Source: Lepidodermella squamata
Taxonomy: Eukaryota; Animalia; Gastrotricha
NCBI GenBank assembly: GCA_047495785.1
Contig: JBLDXI010000024.1
Span: forward strand, 4,092,001-4,156,000
Reading direction: 5' to 3'
Length of the DNA stretch: 64,000 bases
Positions 5,041 to 15,967 of the stretch are shown one piece after another (within the stretch, counting starts at the first letter, position 1; each line of letters begins with the position of its first letter). Below the pieces are notes generated by a model that had not been told where the DNA came from, ran no database searches, and was given only the letters and a program-made list of their open reading frames with translations. The position numbers were made by a program, and so were the translations under genes.

Positions 5041-6300
5041 TTATCGAAGCAGCAATGCTGCGACTGTGATGAAAAACCCTGGAAAGACAACCGATGCACC
5101 ATTCGTTGTCGTTTTGAAAGTTGGCGATACTTGTGTCGTAGTCGTGGGAACCTCGACGTAATCAGCCTTGAACGCGTAAATGTAGCGATTATCAGTAAGG
5201 GCATAAATGATGCCGTCACTGAAAATCGTATCATAACCAAACGCCAAATCTTGACTCGCCATAATATTCCCGGTTTTCTTATCCAAAATCACAATCTGCG
5301 AAACAGTTCGAACAATCAATACGTCATCCAATACAATCGGGCGACCAAAGACTTCAGCATTGCTAGACACCGTGAAAGTGTCTACCATTTTGCCATTCGA
5401 AGCGTCGTAGACCAAAATTTGCTTGCCACAAGGCCGGTAGATTCGACTGCCACCAGTCGCAACCTCCATAGTACAGCTTGATACTGAAGTTGACGAAGAA
5501 GTCCACGCGATTTGCTTAGTATTGATGTCATACGCAGTCATTTCACGCTGAGATGATTGCACCAGCGCCAGATTATCGTTCACAATTGTGATGGGACCAG
5601 TTGAGTCGTACGGCATCTCCGCGGCCTGCCACAACCGCTCACCGGTGAAGCCATCGAACTGGACCAGAGAGCTGTTGACGGTGAAGCTGATGATCCGTTC
5701 GTCACTCGCGACTGTGAAAGACCTCGGGTACGCATCCTGAGCGGTTTGGAACTTGTCGACAGGTTCCCCGGTTAGCGACTTGACCGCGACCAATCCGCCC
5801 TTAACGTTGTCGTCGCAATACACCTGGCTGAGTTTGTTACTAGTGATACAGCCGGTGCCAATAGCGACTTTCTGTCTCCATAGCGTTTTCACATCGCCGA
5901 GAATTTCAAAAGCAAACATTTCCCCGGCAGTTTGGTCCAGGGCGTAGTAAGAGGCGTAAGCTTCGTCGAGCGCCAGGGGTCTCGTTATGGAAGTCGTGCC
6001 GTCTGCGAAAGCGAGAACCACCGAATTAACACCTCCTTTATCGTGTCGTTCCATTCTGCCGTTGCTGGAGATGAAGAGAATGTAGTCTTCATAGGCGTAC
6101 AGGCGGCTGTAGGAGTCGCATTCTTGAACTCGTTGGGTCCATTGTTGCGTGAGTTTGTTGACGTTGCCTAGGGTGTATTTCTTGTAGCCTGTATGCTGAT
6201 TGTCGCCACCGATGCCATTCCAATTGCCGTTTTTCGGCGAAGAGAGGCAGCCTGCAAAGGATGCGGCCAAGAGAATAGCTACTAATGTTGCACTTGCCAT
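5041..6300 (-). CDS. Intronless secreted or surface-anchored PQQ-like (BamB-type) beta-propeller protein, 419 aa
   Basis: Signal peptide; W-x-x-x-GGD-x-QHTG N-terminal motif; repeated blades (FDGFTGERLW, YDINTKQIAW, YDASNGKMV, LDKKTGNIM); Thr-rich stalk and hydrophobic C-terminus. Confidence 0.8.
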   Translation of the reverse strand: MASATLVAILLAASFAGCLSSPKNGNWNGIGGDNQHTGYKKYTLGNVNKLTQQWTQRVQECDSYSRLYAYEDYILFISSNGRMERHDKGGVNSVVLAFADGTTSITRPLALDEAYASYYALDQTAGEMFAFEILGDVKTLWRQKVAIGTGCITSNKLSQVYCDDNVKGGLVAVKSLTGEPVDKFQTAQDAYPRSFTVASDERIISFTVNSSLVQFDGFTGERLWQAAEMPYDSTGPITIVNDNLALVQSSQREMTAYDINTKQIAWTSSSTSVSSCTMEVATGGSRIYRPCGKQILVYDASNGKMVDTFTVSSNAEVFGRPIVLDDVLIVRTVSQIVILDKKTGNIMASQDLAFGYDTIFSDGIIYALTDNRYIYAFKADYVEVPTTTTQVSPTFKTTTNGASVVFPGFFITVAALLLR

Positions 6301-6825
6301 GGTGAATCGTGACGGAGAAGAAGGGAAAGGGACTCTTGAGACCAGAAAACACTTGTCTCTTCAAATTCCTACCATGGCTCGACGTAGGTGTAGCTGAATC
6401 AATGCCTGATTGTGCATAGAGTCCAACTTTTTGGACCTACAGGGTATTATAATATGTTGTTTGCTTATTCAACGCCTCGCCGTTTTTTTATCTTAACCGG
6501 GCATGTTGTAATTGCACTGAAACCTGGGCACGTGTGCATTTATAGAATTCGCGACGTTTTTACAGACTCGCTCTCAGGCTTATCACCTACCACCAACCTC
6601 CAACTGTTCACCCATCGAACGGCAAGAATACAGGACACGGGTGTCACAACGCCGACAAGCCTTATAGGGGAGTCCAAAATGCAAAACGAGGTTGAGTGAT
6701 TTGTGAAATCAAAATTCCTAACCTTTGACGCAATATCTTTCGGGGAATAGAAGAATTGGATGTAGGATTTTGCATGGTATATAAAGCCTATTGTGGTTGA
6801 AAATGGGAATTTGTTCATTGAATTT

Positions 6826-11074: not shown

Positions 11075-11870
11075 ATGTCGAAATTTCTAATTTTCAGCTT
11101 TTTTGCCGTGTTATTGCTGGTAGCTACAGTCGTCTATGCTCAGCCTCCAGGTCGGGCCTCGCCCATGAGCCATCATCATTCGATTTCAAGCAAGTCCTTT
11201 TTATTGACCATTCATTCGACATTCTAATACCAAAATTGAACCTGAAACCTAAAATCAGTCTATTTTGATTTAATCCGTACTTTTGACCCACAATCGAATA
11301 CGTTGAATTTTGTTTTCCATCTTGTTAACTAGGGTGTCCCAAAAGTAACCGAAAATATATGGCAATACCCAAACAAATTGTAGGAAATGAGAGGCGATGT
11401 CCTTTCCCATGGCCAGAAAATGGGAATGAAAATCTCGAATTACCGATATTTTACCGAAAATCCCTAATCATGCTAATCCCTAATCCGTTACCATGCTACG
11501 ATAAATTCCGCAGTTTTTCGGTTTGAAAGCAGATTAAGGATTGAGAATGGGGGATGCTCGTTTAAGGTTGAACTCCGAAAAAATTCGATACTTTTTCATC
11601 GAAAAAATTTGGCAGGGTTATGGGAAAATGGAAAAAAAATTCAATTCCATGCTTCTGAATTATCCATTTTAATTTTTTGTTATAACCTGTGTTCCGTTTT
11701 GGAGCAAAATTTATATTTCTGGTGTTATTACAGAAAAATCGACCGAACTGAACAGCGAGGAGCTGCGAATGTCTGATTTGCTGAGCCTAAACAACGTCTA
11801 CGACCCATCACCAGCTGAGGAAGTCGCCGAACCCAGTGAATCCAAGCGTCTTTATCAACGAATGGGCTGA
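11075..11870 (+). CDS. Putative neuropeptide precursor ending KR-LYQRM-G-stop; exons 11075-11150 and 11734-11870
   Basis: Signal peptide MSKFLIFSFFAVLLLVATVVYA; phase-1 intron 11151-11733; acidic spacer; dibasic KR; amidation Gly immediately before TGA; AATAAA about 60 bp downstream. Missing from the ORF track. Confidence 0.75.
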
Positions 11871-12125
11871 AAGCTAAGCAAAATATAATATTATATTAAA
11901 ATAATATCCATCTTGGCTTGCTGATTTTTAAAATAAAAAGCACACCCTGCATGATACAAGAGATCGGCGAGTTTTTATTCCTTTACCATTCATCAAATAA
12001 ATATTAGATATCAGCGGTATTATAATCAAATTTAATTTAATCACAAAAAATTGAAAAAAATGTATCACGAAAGATCAGATCAGTCACCTTAAAATGTCAG
12101 AATTCAGAGCAAATTTTAGTATTTT

Positions 12126-14362
12126 TCAAGCCATAGGAAGGCTAACGGGGCGTTTAGTGTTGCTGCTATCTCGCAGTTTCGCCGACTTTTGCGTCAGATC
12201 GCCCTGGTCTCTGTTGTTCGAATTCGTATTTTCGCTAATCAAGCTCAACGCGCCGAATGAGACTGATTTTTTAGGCGGCTCATTGTTCACAACAATCGGC
12301 TGTTTCGGAGTCATAGAGGCCGTTAAAGCGCTTCGCAACAACGGTGGAACTGCGGTGGTGGTTGGTTTTCGCGGCTGGGCTACAATTGGAGACGGCGACT
12401 GGGTTTTGCTGGCGAAAATTTGGCGCTTTTCAACGGCGATCGGCTGCTTTTCAAGCTCTTTAACGCTCGGCTTTTCAATCAATGTTTTCTGGTTGAACGC
12501 TGCAATAAAAATTAAAAAATCTCGTAAATAATCGAAAAATGCGAATCTACAACTCATTTGCACCATTTTATAAAACGAAATAAATAATTTAAATACTTTT
12601 CAAATTCTGAAAATGTAGGAAAATACTCAATAAGTAATTCTGTGCTATCAGTTCGCAAGATGCTGCATTAGTAACCCGGGGCAAAGCCTTTACAAATTTC
12701 CTGCGCTCAAAGATCAACGCTCCGATTGCACATCGATCATGCAATTGGAAATTTGCAATTAAAATTAAACGAATTTTAAAAAAATAAAAAACCTAAAAAA
12801 ATATTCGAGGCTGCCAGGAGTCGAACCTGGAATCTTCTGATCCGTAGTCAGACGCGTTGTCCATTGCGCCACAACCCCGCTATGATTAAGAACTTTTTTA
12901 CAGGACCAAACCGGACTCGGGCAAAAAAAATACATGACCGTGTACTAAACCTATAGCGCTATTGAAGTCCATTACAAATAATGCATTCCTGGCACTAAAT
13001 TTAATTCCTTGCAATTGAGGCTCTTTCTTTCCTAATTGATACTAATGCTTAGGTTAAAGCCTCTCAAGCTGCTTGAAATGCTTCAAAGTTTAAAATGAGG
13101 AATTATAACGTCGCTGAGTTCAACGGACCATATTTTAGCGGACCAGTGTTTCGGACTAGGTTGGAGGTGTGCCATATGATTAGTCGATTTCCCCTGAAAA
13201 GTGCCATCCTATGACCAACTATGCACACCTGAGCTATTTAGCCTCACTCTAGCGGTTGCAAACATCCAAGTACTGCAACTTGATTAGGTCCGCTAAATTG
13301 GGTCCGGCGAGTTCAACAAAGCCAGGGTTTTTGGAACTCAGCGGACCGCTCTGTTTAAAGCATCCCCCTATTAAGATGGAATGCAAGTGTGGGTCACAAT
13401 TGGTCTCATTAGATGCGCCAAACCTTGCCGCACACTTCGATGGTATATACATGACTAGGATATAAGGGGTGATTAGTGTGGTCCGCCAAGAAATGGTCCG
13501 TTGAACTCAGCGATATTCATAAATTCGAATTTCTCAGAAAATTAATTTAACAAAATATCTGCAAAACTCACGTTTGTAGAGAACATTTCGGAAGGTGACT
13601 TTGGGCATCAAAGCCGTGACAAAATCAACAATGGTCGCATACTGGGCTTTATCGGCGTCGCTGTTCCACAAATGAACAACGTCTTCGTTTTCACGCACGC
13701 CAACGCTCAGTCCAACAAGTTTGTCACCTAAAATCGGAGAAAAAAATGATAGATATTTTCGATAAAATGAAACAAATAAATCCTGAAGTTGGAACGTACC
13801 TTTCAAAACACAATGATCCAACTCGCCAGTAACCAGCGATTCGAGAAGTACTCGCCAAACGTGTTCCTAAAGTTGAAAAAAGTTATGTCATGAGATATGA
13901 TTGAAAAATTAGCATTAGATAAAATTGCTGGCATTTTCAAATTTTCAAATTTCAACTTGATTAGAAGTGAATCTTTCAGATTTTCGGATTCCAATTTTCG
14001 TTATCAAAATGCGAAACTCGTAAAGTCAAAATAATCAAAAACGAAGAATTTTGAAACGAAGATGGACTCACCGTATCATAAGGATTGCAGCGAAAAGTCC
14101 AGGTTCCACCAGCGCTATTTTCCTCGTCTTCCCAAACCGGTCGTCTTTTGCCGAGCATAAAGTGATAACTGTAGCGCGTATTCAACTGACTGGCAGGCAG
14201 CATTTGTTCGCAAATCACTTGGAGGACTTGCATCGACGAAATGGAATAAATCTGCCGAAGACCGGCCGTAAATTGCGATGTTGACGCTCGTTTCACAGAA
14301 TGGTCCAGCCACAACGTCCACGGCTCATCGAAAATCATTGAATTTTCGTCAGAAGCAGCCAT
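12126..14362 (-). CDS. EIF4E3: Divergent class III cap-binding protein eIF4E3 with a long C-terminal extension; exons 14362-14072, 13866-13800, 13727-13572, 12499-12126
   Basis: Motifs WTLWLD, SYHFMLGKRRPVWEDEENSAGGTW, VWRVLL, VGLSVGVRENEDVVHLWN and VLYKP align with eIF4E3. All three GT-AG introns are phase-consistent. Confidence 0.85.
12806..12878 (-). tRNA. tRNA-Arg(ACG), identical to 8156-8228, inside the last eIF4E3 intron
   Basis: Exact reverse complement of the 8156 copy, including the flank GTTCTTAATCATAGC. Confidence 0.95.
13111..13513. mobile_element. MITE with about 35-bp TIRs in an eIF4E3 intron
   Basis: TCGCTGAGTTCAACGGACCAT...GCGGACCA at the left end and its reverse complement at the right; internal GGTCCGC/GCGGACC motifs. 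TSD not resolved. Confidence 0.75.
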
Positions 14363-14472
14363 CTTTTTCATCAACAAACAAACAAAACAACTAGAAATCA
14401 TCGGAGAAATAATCATGCAAAATTTTACATTAAAAAATCGTACAAAATAATACTGAAAAATAGAGCAATTCG

Positions 14473-15967
14473 TTATTTTTGGACCATTTTCATCAAAGCT
14501 CGAGTAGTAAAAGATTTCGGTCGCTCAAGCGGTAAATTCAACGCTCGGTCCCAGATTAAATTCGACAAAATTCCAATCGATCTGGAAACCGCGAAAATAA
14601 CCGGGTAGAATTCGCGTTCTTTCAAACCGAAATGCGCAAAAATTCCAGGCAATTGAGCCGTAACATTCGGCCAAGGATTGTCCCGCAATTCCGGACTCCC
14701 GTATTTGTTCAAAATCGGCGGAACAATGCAAAATAATCGAGCGGCTAACTTCAAATACGGATCATTTTCGATCAACCTATGCTTTACCGCAAAATCTCGG
14801 ATAGCCATGTATCTCGGGTCGGGTTGGTGTAAAAACGGGTGGCCGTAGCCCGGAATTGTTCCATTCATTTTTATATAATCTTCAACAAAGGTAGCTAAAA
14901 CATTCTCAGACGGGTCGAGGCCGAACTCAGATAAAACTTGATCAAACCAGGCGGAAACTTGCAAGCTTTTCGACCCATGCAAAGGTCCGGCGATTCCGGA
15001 AAACCCGGCTGATAAAGCTAGGAACGGGTCTGATAAAGCCGACCCGACTAGGCGAGAAGCATGAGCGCTGACATTACTAGCCTCATGATCGGCCATAATG
15101 GTCAGGTAAAGCCGCATAAAATCGTGGAAAATTTCACTTTGGAAACCCAGCATTTCAGCGAAATTTTTCGCCCAGTCTGAATCAGGGTCATTTTCAGGCA
15201 CGGGATCGCCGTCATGGTAGATATTCCGGTAAATTGTAGCAGCGATTCGGGGAAGTTTTGCTATAATGTTCAACGAATCTTCGAAAGCATACTCCCAGTG
15301 CTTTTCTTTGCCAACGCCACTGTGGTAAGCATTGGCAAAAGCTGATTCGTTACTCAGCGACGACATGCAAATGGCCAATTGAGTGATAGGGCTCAAATAA
15401 GTTGGCAGATCGCTGAGCAATTTAACAACGTCGTCTGGTAATCGCGATCGAAGAGCCAATTCTGAGGACAGTTCGTGAACTTGCTGTGTGTTAGGCAGGT
15501 CTTTTGATAGCAGTAGCCATAGCATGCCCTCTGGCATTGGTTCTGAGCCACCAGGAGCCCAGGGTAGAAACTGGCGAACTTCGACGACACTTCGGCCACG
15601 GAATTTCACGCCGATATTAGCGTCCATTATCGATGTATCCGAAACAATCCCTCGAAGGCCATGCATTCCATCGTAAATCTTTTTAAAACGAAAGGTTACT
15701 TCGCAGCAGAATGGTTATTCATGTTACCATGTCAATCGTTATATCTCCAATGTTTGTTTTGCCATGACGACTCAAGAACTGTGAGATGACTTTACGTTCT
15801 TCGGTGATGCGCTTTGCTAGTTCCCGGTTCAAGCTCTAATAGGGTGAAATGAGTAAGTTATCACTAAATTATGAAACTCTTACCGGATAAGCTGATTCCG
15901 TGAACAAAAGGTTACCACTTCGCAGCTTTGCGGAAAAATTGCGAAGTATACGATTGAAAAACGACAT
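14473..15967 (-). CDS. CS: Mitochondrial-type citrate synthase paralogue with catalytic Asp replaced by Thr; exons 15967-15884, 15835-15728, 15678-14473
   Basis: Arg-rich N-terminal presequence; motifs EPMPEGMLWLL, DHEASNVSAH, AGPLHG, PGYGH, DPRY, NPWPNV and LERPKS. Confidence 0.9.

Follow-up and report, generated by a model that had tools for sequence, protein, structure and literature searches.

Among the three classes of eIF4E in animals, eIF4E3 (class III) is the least understood, and it is still debated if this class promotes translation or restrains it. In human eIF4E, Trp-73 is the residue that touches eIF4G and 4E-BP, and in other animal eIF4E3s the dorsal surface holds the YxxxxL-hydrophobic motif of eIF4G. 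A gene of this type in the gastrotrich Lepidodermella squamata encodes a protein in which this tryptophan is gone and a long C-terminal tail has been added, which raises the question of what such a protein does at the mRNA cap. The gene lies in a window of 64,000 nucleotides, the whole stretch of DNA that was analysed, and all positions given below refer to it. The only close relative is found on the metagenome contigs L001 and L002. These two contigs are 97.7% identical, and therefore "conserved" here means conserved in two lineages.

Structure of the gene

The gene and its parts are as follows.

14362-12126, minus strand: class III eIF4E gene, four exons, 295 codons, every intron GT..AG
14072..14362, minus strand: exon 1, 97 codons, phase 0, from the start codon to ...NPYDT
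13800..13866, minus strand: exon 2, 67 nt, ending in phase 1, EHVWRVLLESLVTGELDHCVLK
13572..13727, minus strand: exon 3, 156 nt, phase 1 to phase 1, DKLVGLSVGVRENEDVVHLWNSD...VLYK
12500..13571, minus strand: intron 3, 1072 nt (54 nt in the equivalent intron of the relative)
12805-12879, minus strand: tRNA-Arg(ACG) gene inside intron 3, adding to the intron length
13111-13513: element of about 400 bp inside intron 3 with 35-nt terminal inverted repeats, also adding to the intron length
12126..12499, minus strand: exon 4, split Pro codon followed by a 123-residue tail rich in S, P, K and T, stop codon at 12126-12128

Every junction of the four-exon model is of the GT..AG type and in frame. The donor of exon 1 reads ACG/GTGAGT, exon 2 is bounded by tttAG/GAACAC (acceptor) and AAAG/GTACGT (donor), and the donor of exon 3 reads AAAC/GTGAGT. 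The acceptor of exon 4, ttattgcAG/CG, keeps the frame and brings the summed coding length to 888 nt. The GC content of the exons is 0.46-0.50, compared to 0.26-0.28 in the short introns and the 3' flank. An AATAAA signal is located at 11979, about 150 nt downstream of the gene. On the upstream side, the gene starts 110 nt past the stop of a citrate synthase gene on the same strand, with candidate acceptor sites between the two.

The original prediction described a low-complexity C-terminal exon of roughly 120 residues, and this exon is present at 12499-12126. Introns 2 and 3 have the same position and phase in contig L001, exon 3 and exon B of the relative are equal in length and in both phases, and a homologue of exon 4 is found in L001 after an intron of equal position and phase. 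At 0.50, the GC content of exon 4 is also exon-like (3' flank: 0.26), and in the tail comparison its start, PFNQKTLIEK, resembles the usual class III C-terminus, such as AFQTHQAFEG of Capitella. By these three comparisons, it is well supported that the tail exon belongs to the gene. An unspliced read-through of exon 3, ending in ...YKREFCRYFVKLIF-stop, was rejected as the predominant product, given that the relative has an intron of equal position and phase and that the composition of exon 4 is that of coding sequence; it may exist as a minor isoform. A scan of intron 3 outside positions 12805-12879 yielded no short alternative terminal exon encoding the usual HxxHxAFEG end. A search for sequencing runs that contain this stretch returned two, neither of them recorded as RNA.

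Assignment to class III

When the Pfam search was made exon by exon, exon 1 matched IF4E (PF01652) at profile positions 3-82 with E=2.4e-16 and 60.3 bits (cut-off 28.7). Exon 3 matched profile positions 108-143 with E=0.003; being only 51 residues long, it stays below the cut-off when taken alone. For both exons the best solved match is mouse eIF4E3 (4b6u). Exon 1 matches it with E=7e-19, compared to 1.7e-7 for class I, and exon 3 covers mouse residues 142-192 end to end with E=3.4e-8. The nearest named proteins are the eIF4E type 3 proteins of Physella, Capitella, a spider, Argonauta and Porites. Class II (4EHP) was rejected as an identity, since the 4EHP match to exon 1 is far weaker (E about 1e-4) and exon 3 is likewise matched best by mouse eIF4E3.

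A word search with exon 1 returned protein P0001 as its sole match. A metagenome scan found generic eIF4Es only, at no more than 35% identity, and a profile search allowing a 295-residue product gave canonical eIF4E3s only among its best 120 matches. In the tree, the Lepidodermella protein pairs with P0001 (SH-aLRT 97), and the pair is nested in the clade of class III proteins (SH-aLRT 94); the support is modest, since the tree was built on 87 columns only. The stem branch leading to this pair is long (0.49).

PWTLW aligns with PWTFW of mouse eIF4E3, so Trp is present at position 43, as is characteristic of class III. Joshi et al. (2005) define the class additionally by Cys or Tyr in place of Trp-56. 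This position holds Phe in Lepidodermella and Tyr in the relative; thus the protein departs from the letter of the definition (Cys or Tyr) and agrees with its sense (not Trp). The fold, the Trp at 43 and the absence of Trp at 56 are common to the Lepidodermella protein, mouse 4b6u and the mollusc and annelid proteins. Also common to them are the VR.xEDVVxxWN block and a core ending in ...YK followed by Pro. Judged by these comparisons, the gene is of the eIF4E3 type, as its first description had proposed, and is probably the eIF4E3 gene of its lineage, intact and spliced from four exons.

It can also be seen that the gene is under purifying selection. Between the Lepidodermella gene and that of the relative, pS is 0.81 (saturated) and pN is 0.25-0.30, and dN is far below dS.

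Cap pocket

Three codons on the two faces of the protein are the following.

14270..14272, minus strand: codon TTT, Phe-31, equivalent of Trp-56 (Cys-52 of mouse eIF4E3)
14132-14134, minus strand: Trp of PVWED, equivalent of Trp-102
14219..14221, minus strand: codon CAA, Gln-48, equivalent of Trp-73 in the alignment to 4b6u

The residues of the cap pocket and the core are distributed over the first three exons. Exon 1 contains PWTLW (Trp-43 and Trp-46), the Phe at the Trp-56 position, dorsal helix 1 (SMQVLQVICEQML), PVWED (Trp-102 and Glu-103) and GGTW (Trp-113, with its Gly-Gly). Exon 2 contains the Trp-130 equivalent and dorsal helix 2, and exon 3, where the eIF4E core terminates, contains the equivalents of Arg-157 and Trp-166. 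All of these are kept apart from the helices, and the cap contacts PVWED, HLW, GVR and Phe-31 align with their counterparts; the PVWED motif had rightly been read as intact. Only two pocket residues are specific to the lineage: the Gln that precedes the Trp-166 equivalent by two residues is replaced by His, and the Arg of HLMR by Leu.

In the alignment to 4b6u, SQF stands over AEC, and the residue where vertebrates have Cys is indeed Phe, as predicted. The suggestion that an aromatic cap residue had thereby been gained proved to be mistaken. Among the 132 family matches, this column contains Tyr 80 times, Trp 34 times, Cys 10 times and Phe 6 times. The Cys is confined to 10 vertebrate-type rows, and the Phe rows include some inside the class III clade. 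Non-vertebrate class III proteins are defined by Tyr at this position (Joshi et al. 2005). Because Tyr is both the commonest residue of the column and the defining one, the Phe represents a conservative variant of the ancestral state. Tyr or Phe is the normal condition of invertebrate class III proteins, and Cys is a vertebrate oddity.

Dorsal surface

The opposite, dorsal face has changed. In the alignment to 4b6u, SMQVLQVI lies over TVQIFWSV and places Gln at the Trp-73 position, so that the (S/T)VxxFW motif is reduced to SMQVLQ. Trp occupies this column in 127 of the 132 family matches, and another 116 class III proteins have it without exception. The relative, at 60% identity, has Thr here, and the loss is thus common to both species. 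The reported loss of the residue that binds eIF4G and 4E-BP is in this way borne out by the family alignment. According to Joshi (2005), Trp-73 is kept in all non-protist members of classes I-III except one Drosophila paralogue. The motif is common to the classes and does not define class III, but in function it is the hallmark of eIF4G binding.

Moreover, Trp-73 is not the only residue affected. The Phe next to it is replaced by Leu, and the NNIP turn is gone, so that the whole (S/T)VxxFWxVYNNIP helix of class III is replaced. The same is true of WKELLLAxIGEQ in helix 2, where the Glu-132 and Leu-135 positions (exon 2) hold Val and Glu. The Pro-38/Leu-39 equivalents are altered as well. In a comparison against 30 class III proteins, 37 columns were conserved at a level of at least 85%. 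Thirteen of them are altered in both species, and the two dorsal helices account for 11 of these (Fisher p=9e-5; 1.4e-3 with helix 2 shifted by one residue). Therefore, the remodelling is selective: both dorsal helices are rewritten and the cap pocket is intact. The dorsal helices are alike in the Lepidodermella protein and the relative (SSM..L..V/I C.Q; WR.L), which indicates that the new surface is itself conserved. On this comparison, the dorsal surface is taken to have been rewritten in the common ancestor of Lepidodermella squamata and its one known relative.

C-terminal tail

In place of the [PA][HF]xxHxAFEG C-terminus of class III, the Lepidodermella protein has a degenerate version followed by an extension of about 110 residues. 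The 123 residues of the tail include no Tyr, Trp, Cys or His, and by its composition the tail is probably disordered. The extension contains the motif that had been singled out as KKSVSF, a possible dock for protein phosphatase 1 (PP1).

12255..12269, minus strand: KSVSF, model residues 249-253, with PPK before and GALS-LI after

KSVSF is the sole match of the tail to the loose RVxF pattern [RK]-x(0,1)-[VI]-{P}-[FW]. The tail of the relative has 22 residues and ends in ...NSSRVSF-stop, but is otherwise unrelated. A [KR]x0-1VSF motif is thus common to the two proteins, and none of the 102 canonical eIF4E3 tails examined (0/102) has a match to the pattern. Because the motif occurs in the tails of both species and is absent from these 102, docking of PP1 by the tail is possible. 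The region resembles those of RVxF-type PP1 interactors in its low complexity, in the Ser at the x position and in the basic residues upstream; it differs in having neither SILK nor MyPhoNE, the auxiliary PP1 motifs, and PP1 binding is here predicted from the motif. The same residues also fit a site for a basophilic kinase or for 14-3-3.

It is quite possible, at somewhat less than even confidence, that the dorsal remodelling is real but that the VSF motif does not dock PP1. With basic residues upstream of its Ser, it would then be a target of phosphorylation or of 14-3-3-type binding, or it would have arisen by chance in a disordered tail that evolves fast. A motif so short and loose is weak on its own, as 8.3% and 5.5% of the shuffled tails match the pattern. 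Chance would produce a match in both tails jointly in about 0.5% of cases. The R-V-S-F-stop of the relative would also suit binding of its C-terminus by 14-3-3 (mode III) or by a PDZ domain (class II), the absence of SILK and MyPhoNE points in the same direction, and a word search with the tail found no relatives. Against this, the motif recurs in two tails that otherwise share almost nothing, and canonical tails lack it. Additionally, both copies take the RV[S]F form and are preceded by basic residues, like known PP1 docks, and in Lepidodermella a Leu-Ile follows four residues past the motif, where some PP1 regulators carry a hydrophobic pair.

Comparison with eIF4E proteins that lack Trp-73 or eIF4G binding

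The best functional analogy is provided by Drosophila eIF4E-6 (eIF4E-1d of Joshi et al. 2005), likewise an animal eIF4E paralogue without the Trp-73 equivalent. It is reported to bind the cap but neither eIF4G nor 4E-BP and to fail in rescuing yeast, and a role as repressor is suspected (PMC13733232). However, eIF4E-6 belongs to class I, where it arose as a paralogue in a recent expansion specific to Drosophila, and its C-terminus is altered. It is not an orthologue of eIF4E3, and an RVxF tail has not been reported for it.

A second comparison is offered by 4EHP (eIF4E2, class II), which binds caps but not eIF4G and, by its occupation of the cap, represses translation. Unlike the Lepidodermella protein, 4EHP retains the Trp-73 equivalent, and its dorsal face binds GIGYF and 4E-T. 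At position 43 it has Tyr or Phe, whereas the Lepidodermella protein has Trp.

Loss of Trp-73 is also seen in acanthocephalans. The proteins of Pomphorhynchus laevis (KAI0979179.1) and Neoechinorhynchus agilis (KAL7670070.1) are class III-like, with Tyr-56 and with Asn in place of Trp-73. They are 30-36% identical to the Lepidodermella protein and have no RVxF-type tail, and the Pomphorhynchus protein, unlike that of Lepidodermella, retains NNIP. In a tree made without the helix columns, the acanthocephalan protein P0036 is nearest to a rotifer protein, and the Lepidodermella protein is nearest to mollusc and annelid proteins; a single clade of acanthocephalan and Lepidodermella proteins is not rejected (p-AU 0.6). 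The separate neighbours in the tree suggest that the losses in acanthocephalans and in this lineage were probably independent.

Possible function

From a cap pocket that is kept and a Trp-73 that is lost along with its neighbours, it can be proposed that the protein probably binds caps without starting translation, and a cap-binding non-initiator is the most likely description of it. mRNA caps would still be bound, and the canonical recruitment of eIF4G and capture of 4E-BP would be lost. The protein would then act as a competitor or repressor that occupies the cap, or it would serve as the platform of a partner specific to the lineage, an outcome akin to that of eIF4E-6 and also, in outcome, to that of 4EHP. 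As the least secure step, the [KR]x0-1VSF motif of the disordered tail may dock PP1 at the cap-bound complex. As a whole, this explanation, an eIF4E3 with cap binding kept, the canonical eIF4G/4E-BP contact lost, a role as repressor or platform and a possible PP1 dock, is favored at slightly better than even confidence.

It is unlikely that the protein is still a working initiation factor whose dorsal face has co-evolved with the eIF4G, or an eIF4G-like scaffold, of its lineage through other contacts. Strong purifying selection, an intact cap pocket and a new surface that is conserved in both species speak for such a factor, and mouse eIF4E3 does bind eIF4G (Joshi 2005). On the other side, a non-aromatic replacement of Trp-73 abolishes the binding of eIF4G and 4E-BP in the eIF4Es tested (Joshi 2005). 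The sole animal precedent, eIF4E-6, has no eIF4G binding, and the changes extend to the equivalents of Glu-132, Leu-135 and Pro-38/Leu-39. Unlike mouse eIF4E3, the Lepidodermella protein is therefore predicted not to bind eIF4G.

A more specific proposal is that of a cap-tethered phosphatase adaptor, which has given up eIF4G binding and whose tail brings PP1 to the 5' cap. This is an improbable reading. If true, the PP1 would dephosphorylate 4E-BP-like proteins near the cap, other eIF4Es or mRNP repressors, and cap recognition would be linked directly to phosphatase signalling. To our knowledge, no member of the eIF4E family has so far been described with such a direct link, and no description of a member carrying its own PP1 dock was found in the literature searched.

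The preferred reading of a cap-binding non-initiator gives the gene a wider meaning within the scope of one small invertebrate lineage. It would be a natural separation-of-function variant, with the cap pocket under selection and the eIF4G-binding face rewritten, and it provides a concrete construct with which to study the action of eIF4E3 when the eIF4G contact is missing. Together with the probably independent loss in acanthocephalans, it suggests that class III proteins can be retained solely to occupy caps or to engage new partners. Should the tail really dock PP1, a new route of the phosphatase to the mRNA cap would, speculatively, be added.

It is very doubtful that the protein is instead a cap-binder adapted to spliced-leader trans-spliced mRNAs and their trimethylguanosine caps. 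The 110-nt distance from the citrate synthase stop and the candidate acceptor sites in it would suit this proposal. However, the pocket residues are those of an ordinary class III protein except for the Gln to His and Arg to Leu (HLMR) changes, and the changes cluster on the dorsal face opposite the pocket.

Finally, a decaying or functionless eIF4E3 duplicate under relaxed constraint is hardly credible despite the long stem branch (0.49) and the many otherwise invariant residues lost, and a pseudogene was rejected by the selection (pN against pS) and the pattern of conservation: pN is 0.25-0.30 against a saturated pS, the frame is open through four exons here and three in the relative, the fold and cap residues are all kept with losses limited to one surface, and the intron positions are conserved, as is the synteny with a convergent LYQRMG peptide gene.

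Identity and structure of the gene

The eIF4E3-type gene of the window consists of four exons with GT..AG at every junction, which sum to 888 nt (295 codons plus stop).

Exons of the window eIF4E3 gene
14362-14072, minus strand: exon 1, 97 codons
13866-13800, minus strand: exon 2, 67 nt
13727-13572, minus strand: exon 3, 156 nt
12499-12126, minus strand: exon 4, 374 nt, stop included

In the similarity searches the exons were queried singly. The Pfam IF4E profile recognizes exon 1 (E=2.4e-16), and its C-terminal part aligns with exon 3. Among solved structures, exon 1 is by a wide margin closest to mouse eIF4E3 (4b6u; 7e-19), followed by class I (1.7e-7) and class II (~1e-4) proteins; exon 3 aligns with 4b6u end to end up to ...FYK (3.4e-8). 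When 1.84 billion representatives were scanned in full with HMMER, one close relative emerged, the protein P0001 (60% identity), and after it the eIF4E type 3 of Physella, Capitella, spiders, Argonauta and Porites (38-47%). P0001 is carried by two metagenome contigs, L001 and L002, which are 97.7% identical and therefore represent one further species. In a tree of the exon 1 region, the window protein and P0001 are paired (SH-aLRT 97), with a long shared stem (0.49), and the pair is nested in the class III clade (SH-aLRT 94). The apparent spiralian eIF4E3 affinity fits a gastrotrich source.

The relative's gene has three exons (6001-6349, 6396-6551 and 6606-6676; 191 codons). At 156 nt, its middle exon equals window exon 3 in length, and the two introns flanking it match window introns 2 and 3 precisely in both position and phase. 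The counterpart of intron 3, which interrupts the same codon in identical phase, is just 54 nt long.

Exon 4 probably belongs to the eIF4E3 gene. The reading frame continues into exon 4 when the exon 3 donor (after ...TAC AAA C) is joined to the acceptor ttattgcAG, and an AATAAA is found about 150 nt past the stop. The GC content is 0.50 in exon 4 and 0.46-0.48 in exons 1-3, against 0.26-0.28 in the short introns and 3' flank. Examination of intron 3 gave no candidate for an alternative terminal exon. When the tails are compared, exon 4 starts with (P)FNQKTLIEK and the relative's last exon with (A)FKDKNPMF, and both recall the usual class III end, such as AFQTHQAFEG of Capitella. Intron 3 of the window gene is long (1072 nt) because a tRNA gene and an inverted-repeat element lie inside it. 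The repeat end of this element has no further copy elsewhere in the window. The open frame opposite exon 4 is most simply regarded as a shadow of the coding exon, not a gene.

Other features at intron 3 and exon 4
12805-12879, minus strand: tRNA-Arg(ACG) gene within intron 3, same strand as eIF4E3
13111-13513: MITE-like element of about 400 bp in intron 3, with 35-nt terminal inverted repeats, 91% complementary
12094-12531, plus strand: 145-codon open frame opposite exon 4

Remodelling of the dorsal face

The original prediction was that the Trp needed for eIF4G binding is lost while the Trp-102 motif is intact, and both parts are borne out by alignment with mouse eIF4E3: SMQVLQVI stands over TVQIFWSV, placing Gln at the Trp-73 equivalent, and RRPVWEDEEN stands over RRPLWEEESN. 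The change is of a whole surface, not of a single residue. In an alignment of the exon pieces of both species with 30 full-length class III proteins, 37 columns reached 85% conservation or more among the class III proteins. Thirteen of them are changed in both species, 11 of these within the two dorsal helices (Fisher p=9e-5; 1.4e-3 with helix 2 offset by one residue). Helix 1, T..FW.VYNNIP in class III, reads S..LQ.ICEQML in the window and S..LT.VCAQIS in the relative; helix 2, WKELLLAxIGEQ in class III, reads WRVLLESLVTGE and WRTLFSGMVSGS, respectively. The Pro-38 and Leu-39 equivalents likewise differ. The cap-side and fold residues are all kept, namely the equivalents of Trp-43, Trp-46, aromatic-56, Trp-102, Glu-103, Gly-Gly-Trp-113, Trp-130, Arg-157 and Trp-166. 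Divergence between the two species is saturated at synonymous sites (pS 0.81) and far lower at nonsynonymous ones (pN 0.25-0.30); therefore, purifying selection has acted on the gene ever since the remodelling. At the level of sequence, these comparisons show that selection has maintained this class III eIF4E, that its cap pocket is intact and that its canonical partner face is rewritten.

At position 56 the predicted Phe is present (SQF over AEC in the mouse eIF4E3 alignment). Across the family matches this column contains Tyr 80 times, Trp 34 (class I-like), Cys 10 (vertebrate type) and Phe 6, and the relative has Tyr. Tyr at this position defines non-vertebrate class III (Joshi et al. 2005, PMC1260017). 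According to both the counts and that study, Tyr is the usual non-vertebrate state, so the aromatic residue was not gained, contrary to the proposal; as judged from the alignment, Phe represents a conservative change from the ancestral state.

Distribution of the Trp-73 loss

Trp occupies position 73 in 127 of 132 matches covering the region, and in 116/116 additional class III proteins found by profile search. The five exceptions are the window protein (Gln), P0001 (Thr), two acanthocephalan proteins with Asn (P0036, Pomphorhynchus laevis KAI0979179.1; P0102, Neoechinorhynchus agilis KAL7670070.1) and a class I-like metagenome protein (Arg). Trp-73 is kept in all non-protist class I-III members except one Drosophila paralogue, and its replacement by a non-aromatic residue abolishes binding of eIF4G and 4E-BP (Joshi et al. 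2005, PMC1260017). No paper describing the acanthocephalan class III loss was found.

A single clade of the window pair and the acanthocephalans is not rejected by the AU test (p 0.94 with the helix columns, 0.60 without). The losses in the two groups are nevertheless likely to be independent events, because the neighbours differ once the helix columns are removed (a rotifer protein for P0036, mollusc and annelid proteins for the window pair) and rotifer eIF4E3s retain Trp-73.

The C-terminal tail

The low-complexity C-terminal exon with KKSVSF was also correctly anticipated: the exon 4 tail (123 residues, rich in Ser, Pro, Lys and Thr) reads PPKKSVSF, its sole loose RVxF match, in which KSVSF satisfies [RK]-x(0,1)-[VI]-{P}-[FW]. 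The relative's tail has only 22 residues and terminates in ...NSSRVSF-stop. Shuffled tails match at rates of 8.3% (window) and 5.5% (relative), giving a joint chance of about 0.5%, a post hoc figure. The loose motif occurs in 0/102 canonical class III tails, and in an earlier set of 81 tails there were only four, all chance-like. SILK and MyPhoNE motifs are absent, and no paper was found that describes a PP1 dock within any eIF4E family member. It is unlikely that the tail motif docks PP1. A basophilic-kinase or 14-3-3-type site is likewise compatible with these residues, and the terminal position in the relative would also suit a C-terminal ligand.

Possible function

The window protein would bind caps, but not eIF4G or 4E-BPs canonically; it may thus act as a competitor of the initiating eIF4E or work with a lineage-specific partner. 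The closest functional analogy is Drosophila eIF4E-6, which binds the cap but neither eIF4G nor 4E-BP, fails to rescue yeast and is a suspected repressor (PMC13733232). Mouse eIF4E3 binds eIF4G, and its sequestration of eIF4G has been proposed. In contrast, the window variant is predicted to be unable to sequester eIF4G, so that repression, if any, would come from the cap side. No paper was found on eIF4E in gastrotrichs or acanthocephalans. For translation specialists, the interest lies in a natural, putative separation-of-function eIF4E3, recognized from sequence in two closely allied species.

Neighbouring genes

In both genomes a small convergent gene ending ...KRLYQRMG is found downstream of eIF4E3, at the same relative position and orientation; this peptide-precursor candidate is thus conserved between the two species. 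On the upstream side, a citrate synthase gene encoded on the same strand has its stop only 110 nt before the start codon of eIF4E3. The gap contains no AATAAA and two acceptor-like sites, tttttcag and tttctag, an operon-like arrangement. In the relative, a long open frame lies downstream of eIF4E3.

Neighbours of eIF4E3 in the two genomes
Window 11769-11870, plus strand: small convergent gene
L001 6818-6997, minus strand: small convergent gene
Window 14363-15666, minus strand: citrate synthase gene, 397-codon open frame (Pfam Citrate_synt E=1.4e-70)
L001 8239-11529, plus strand: 1096-codon open frame, very Ser/Thr-rich and mucin-like, with an internal unknown-base run
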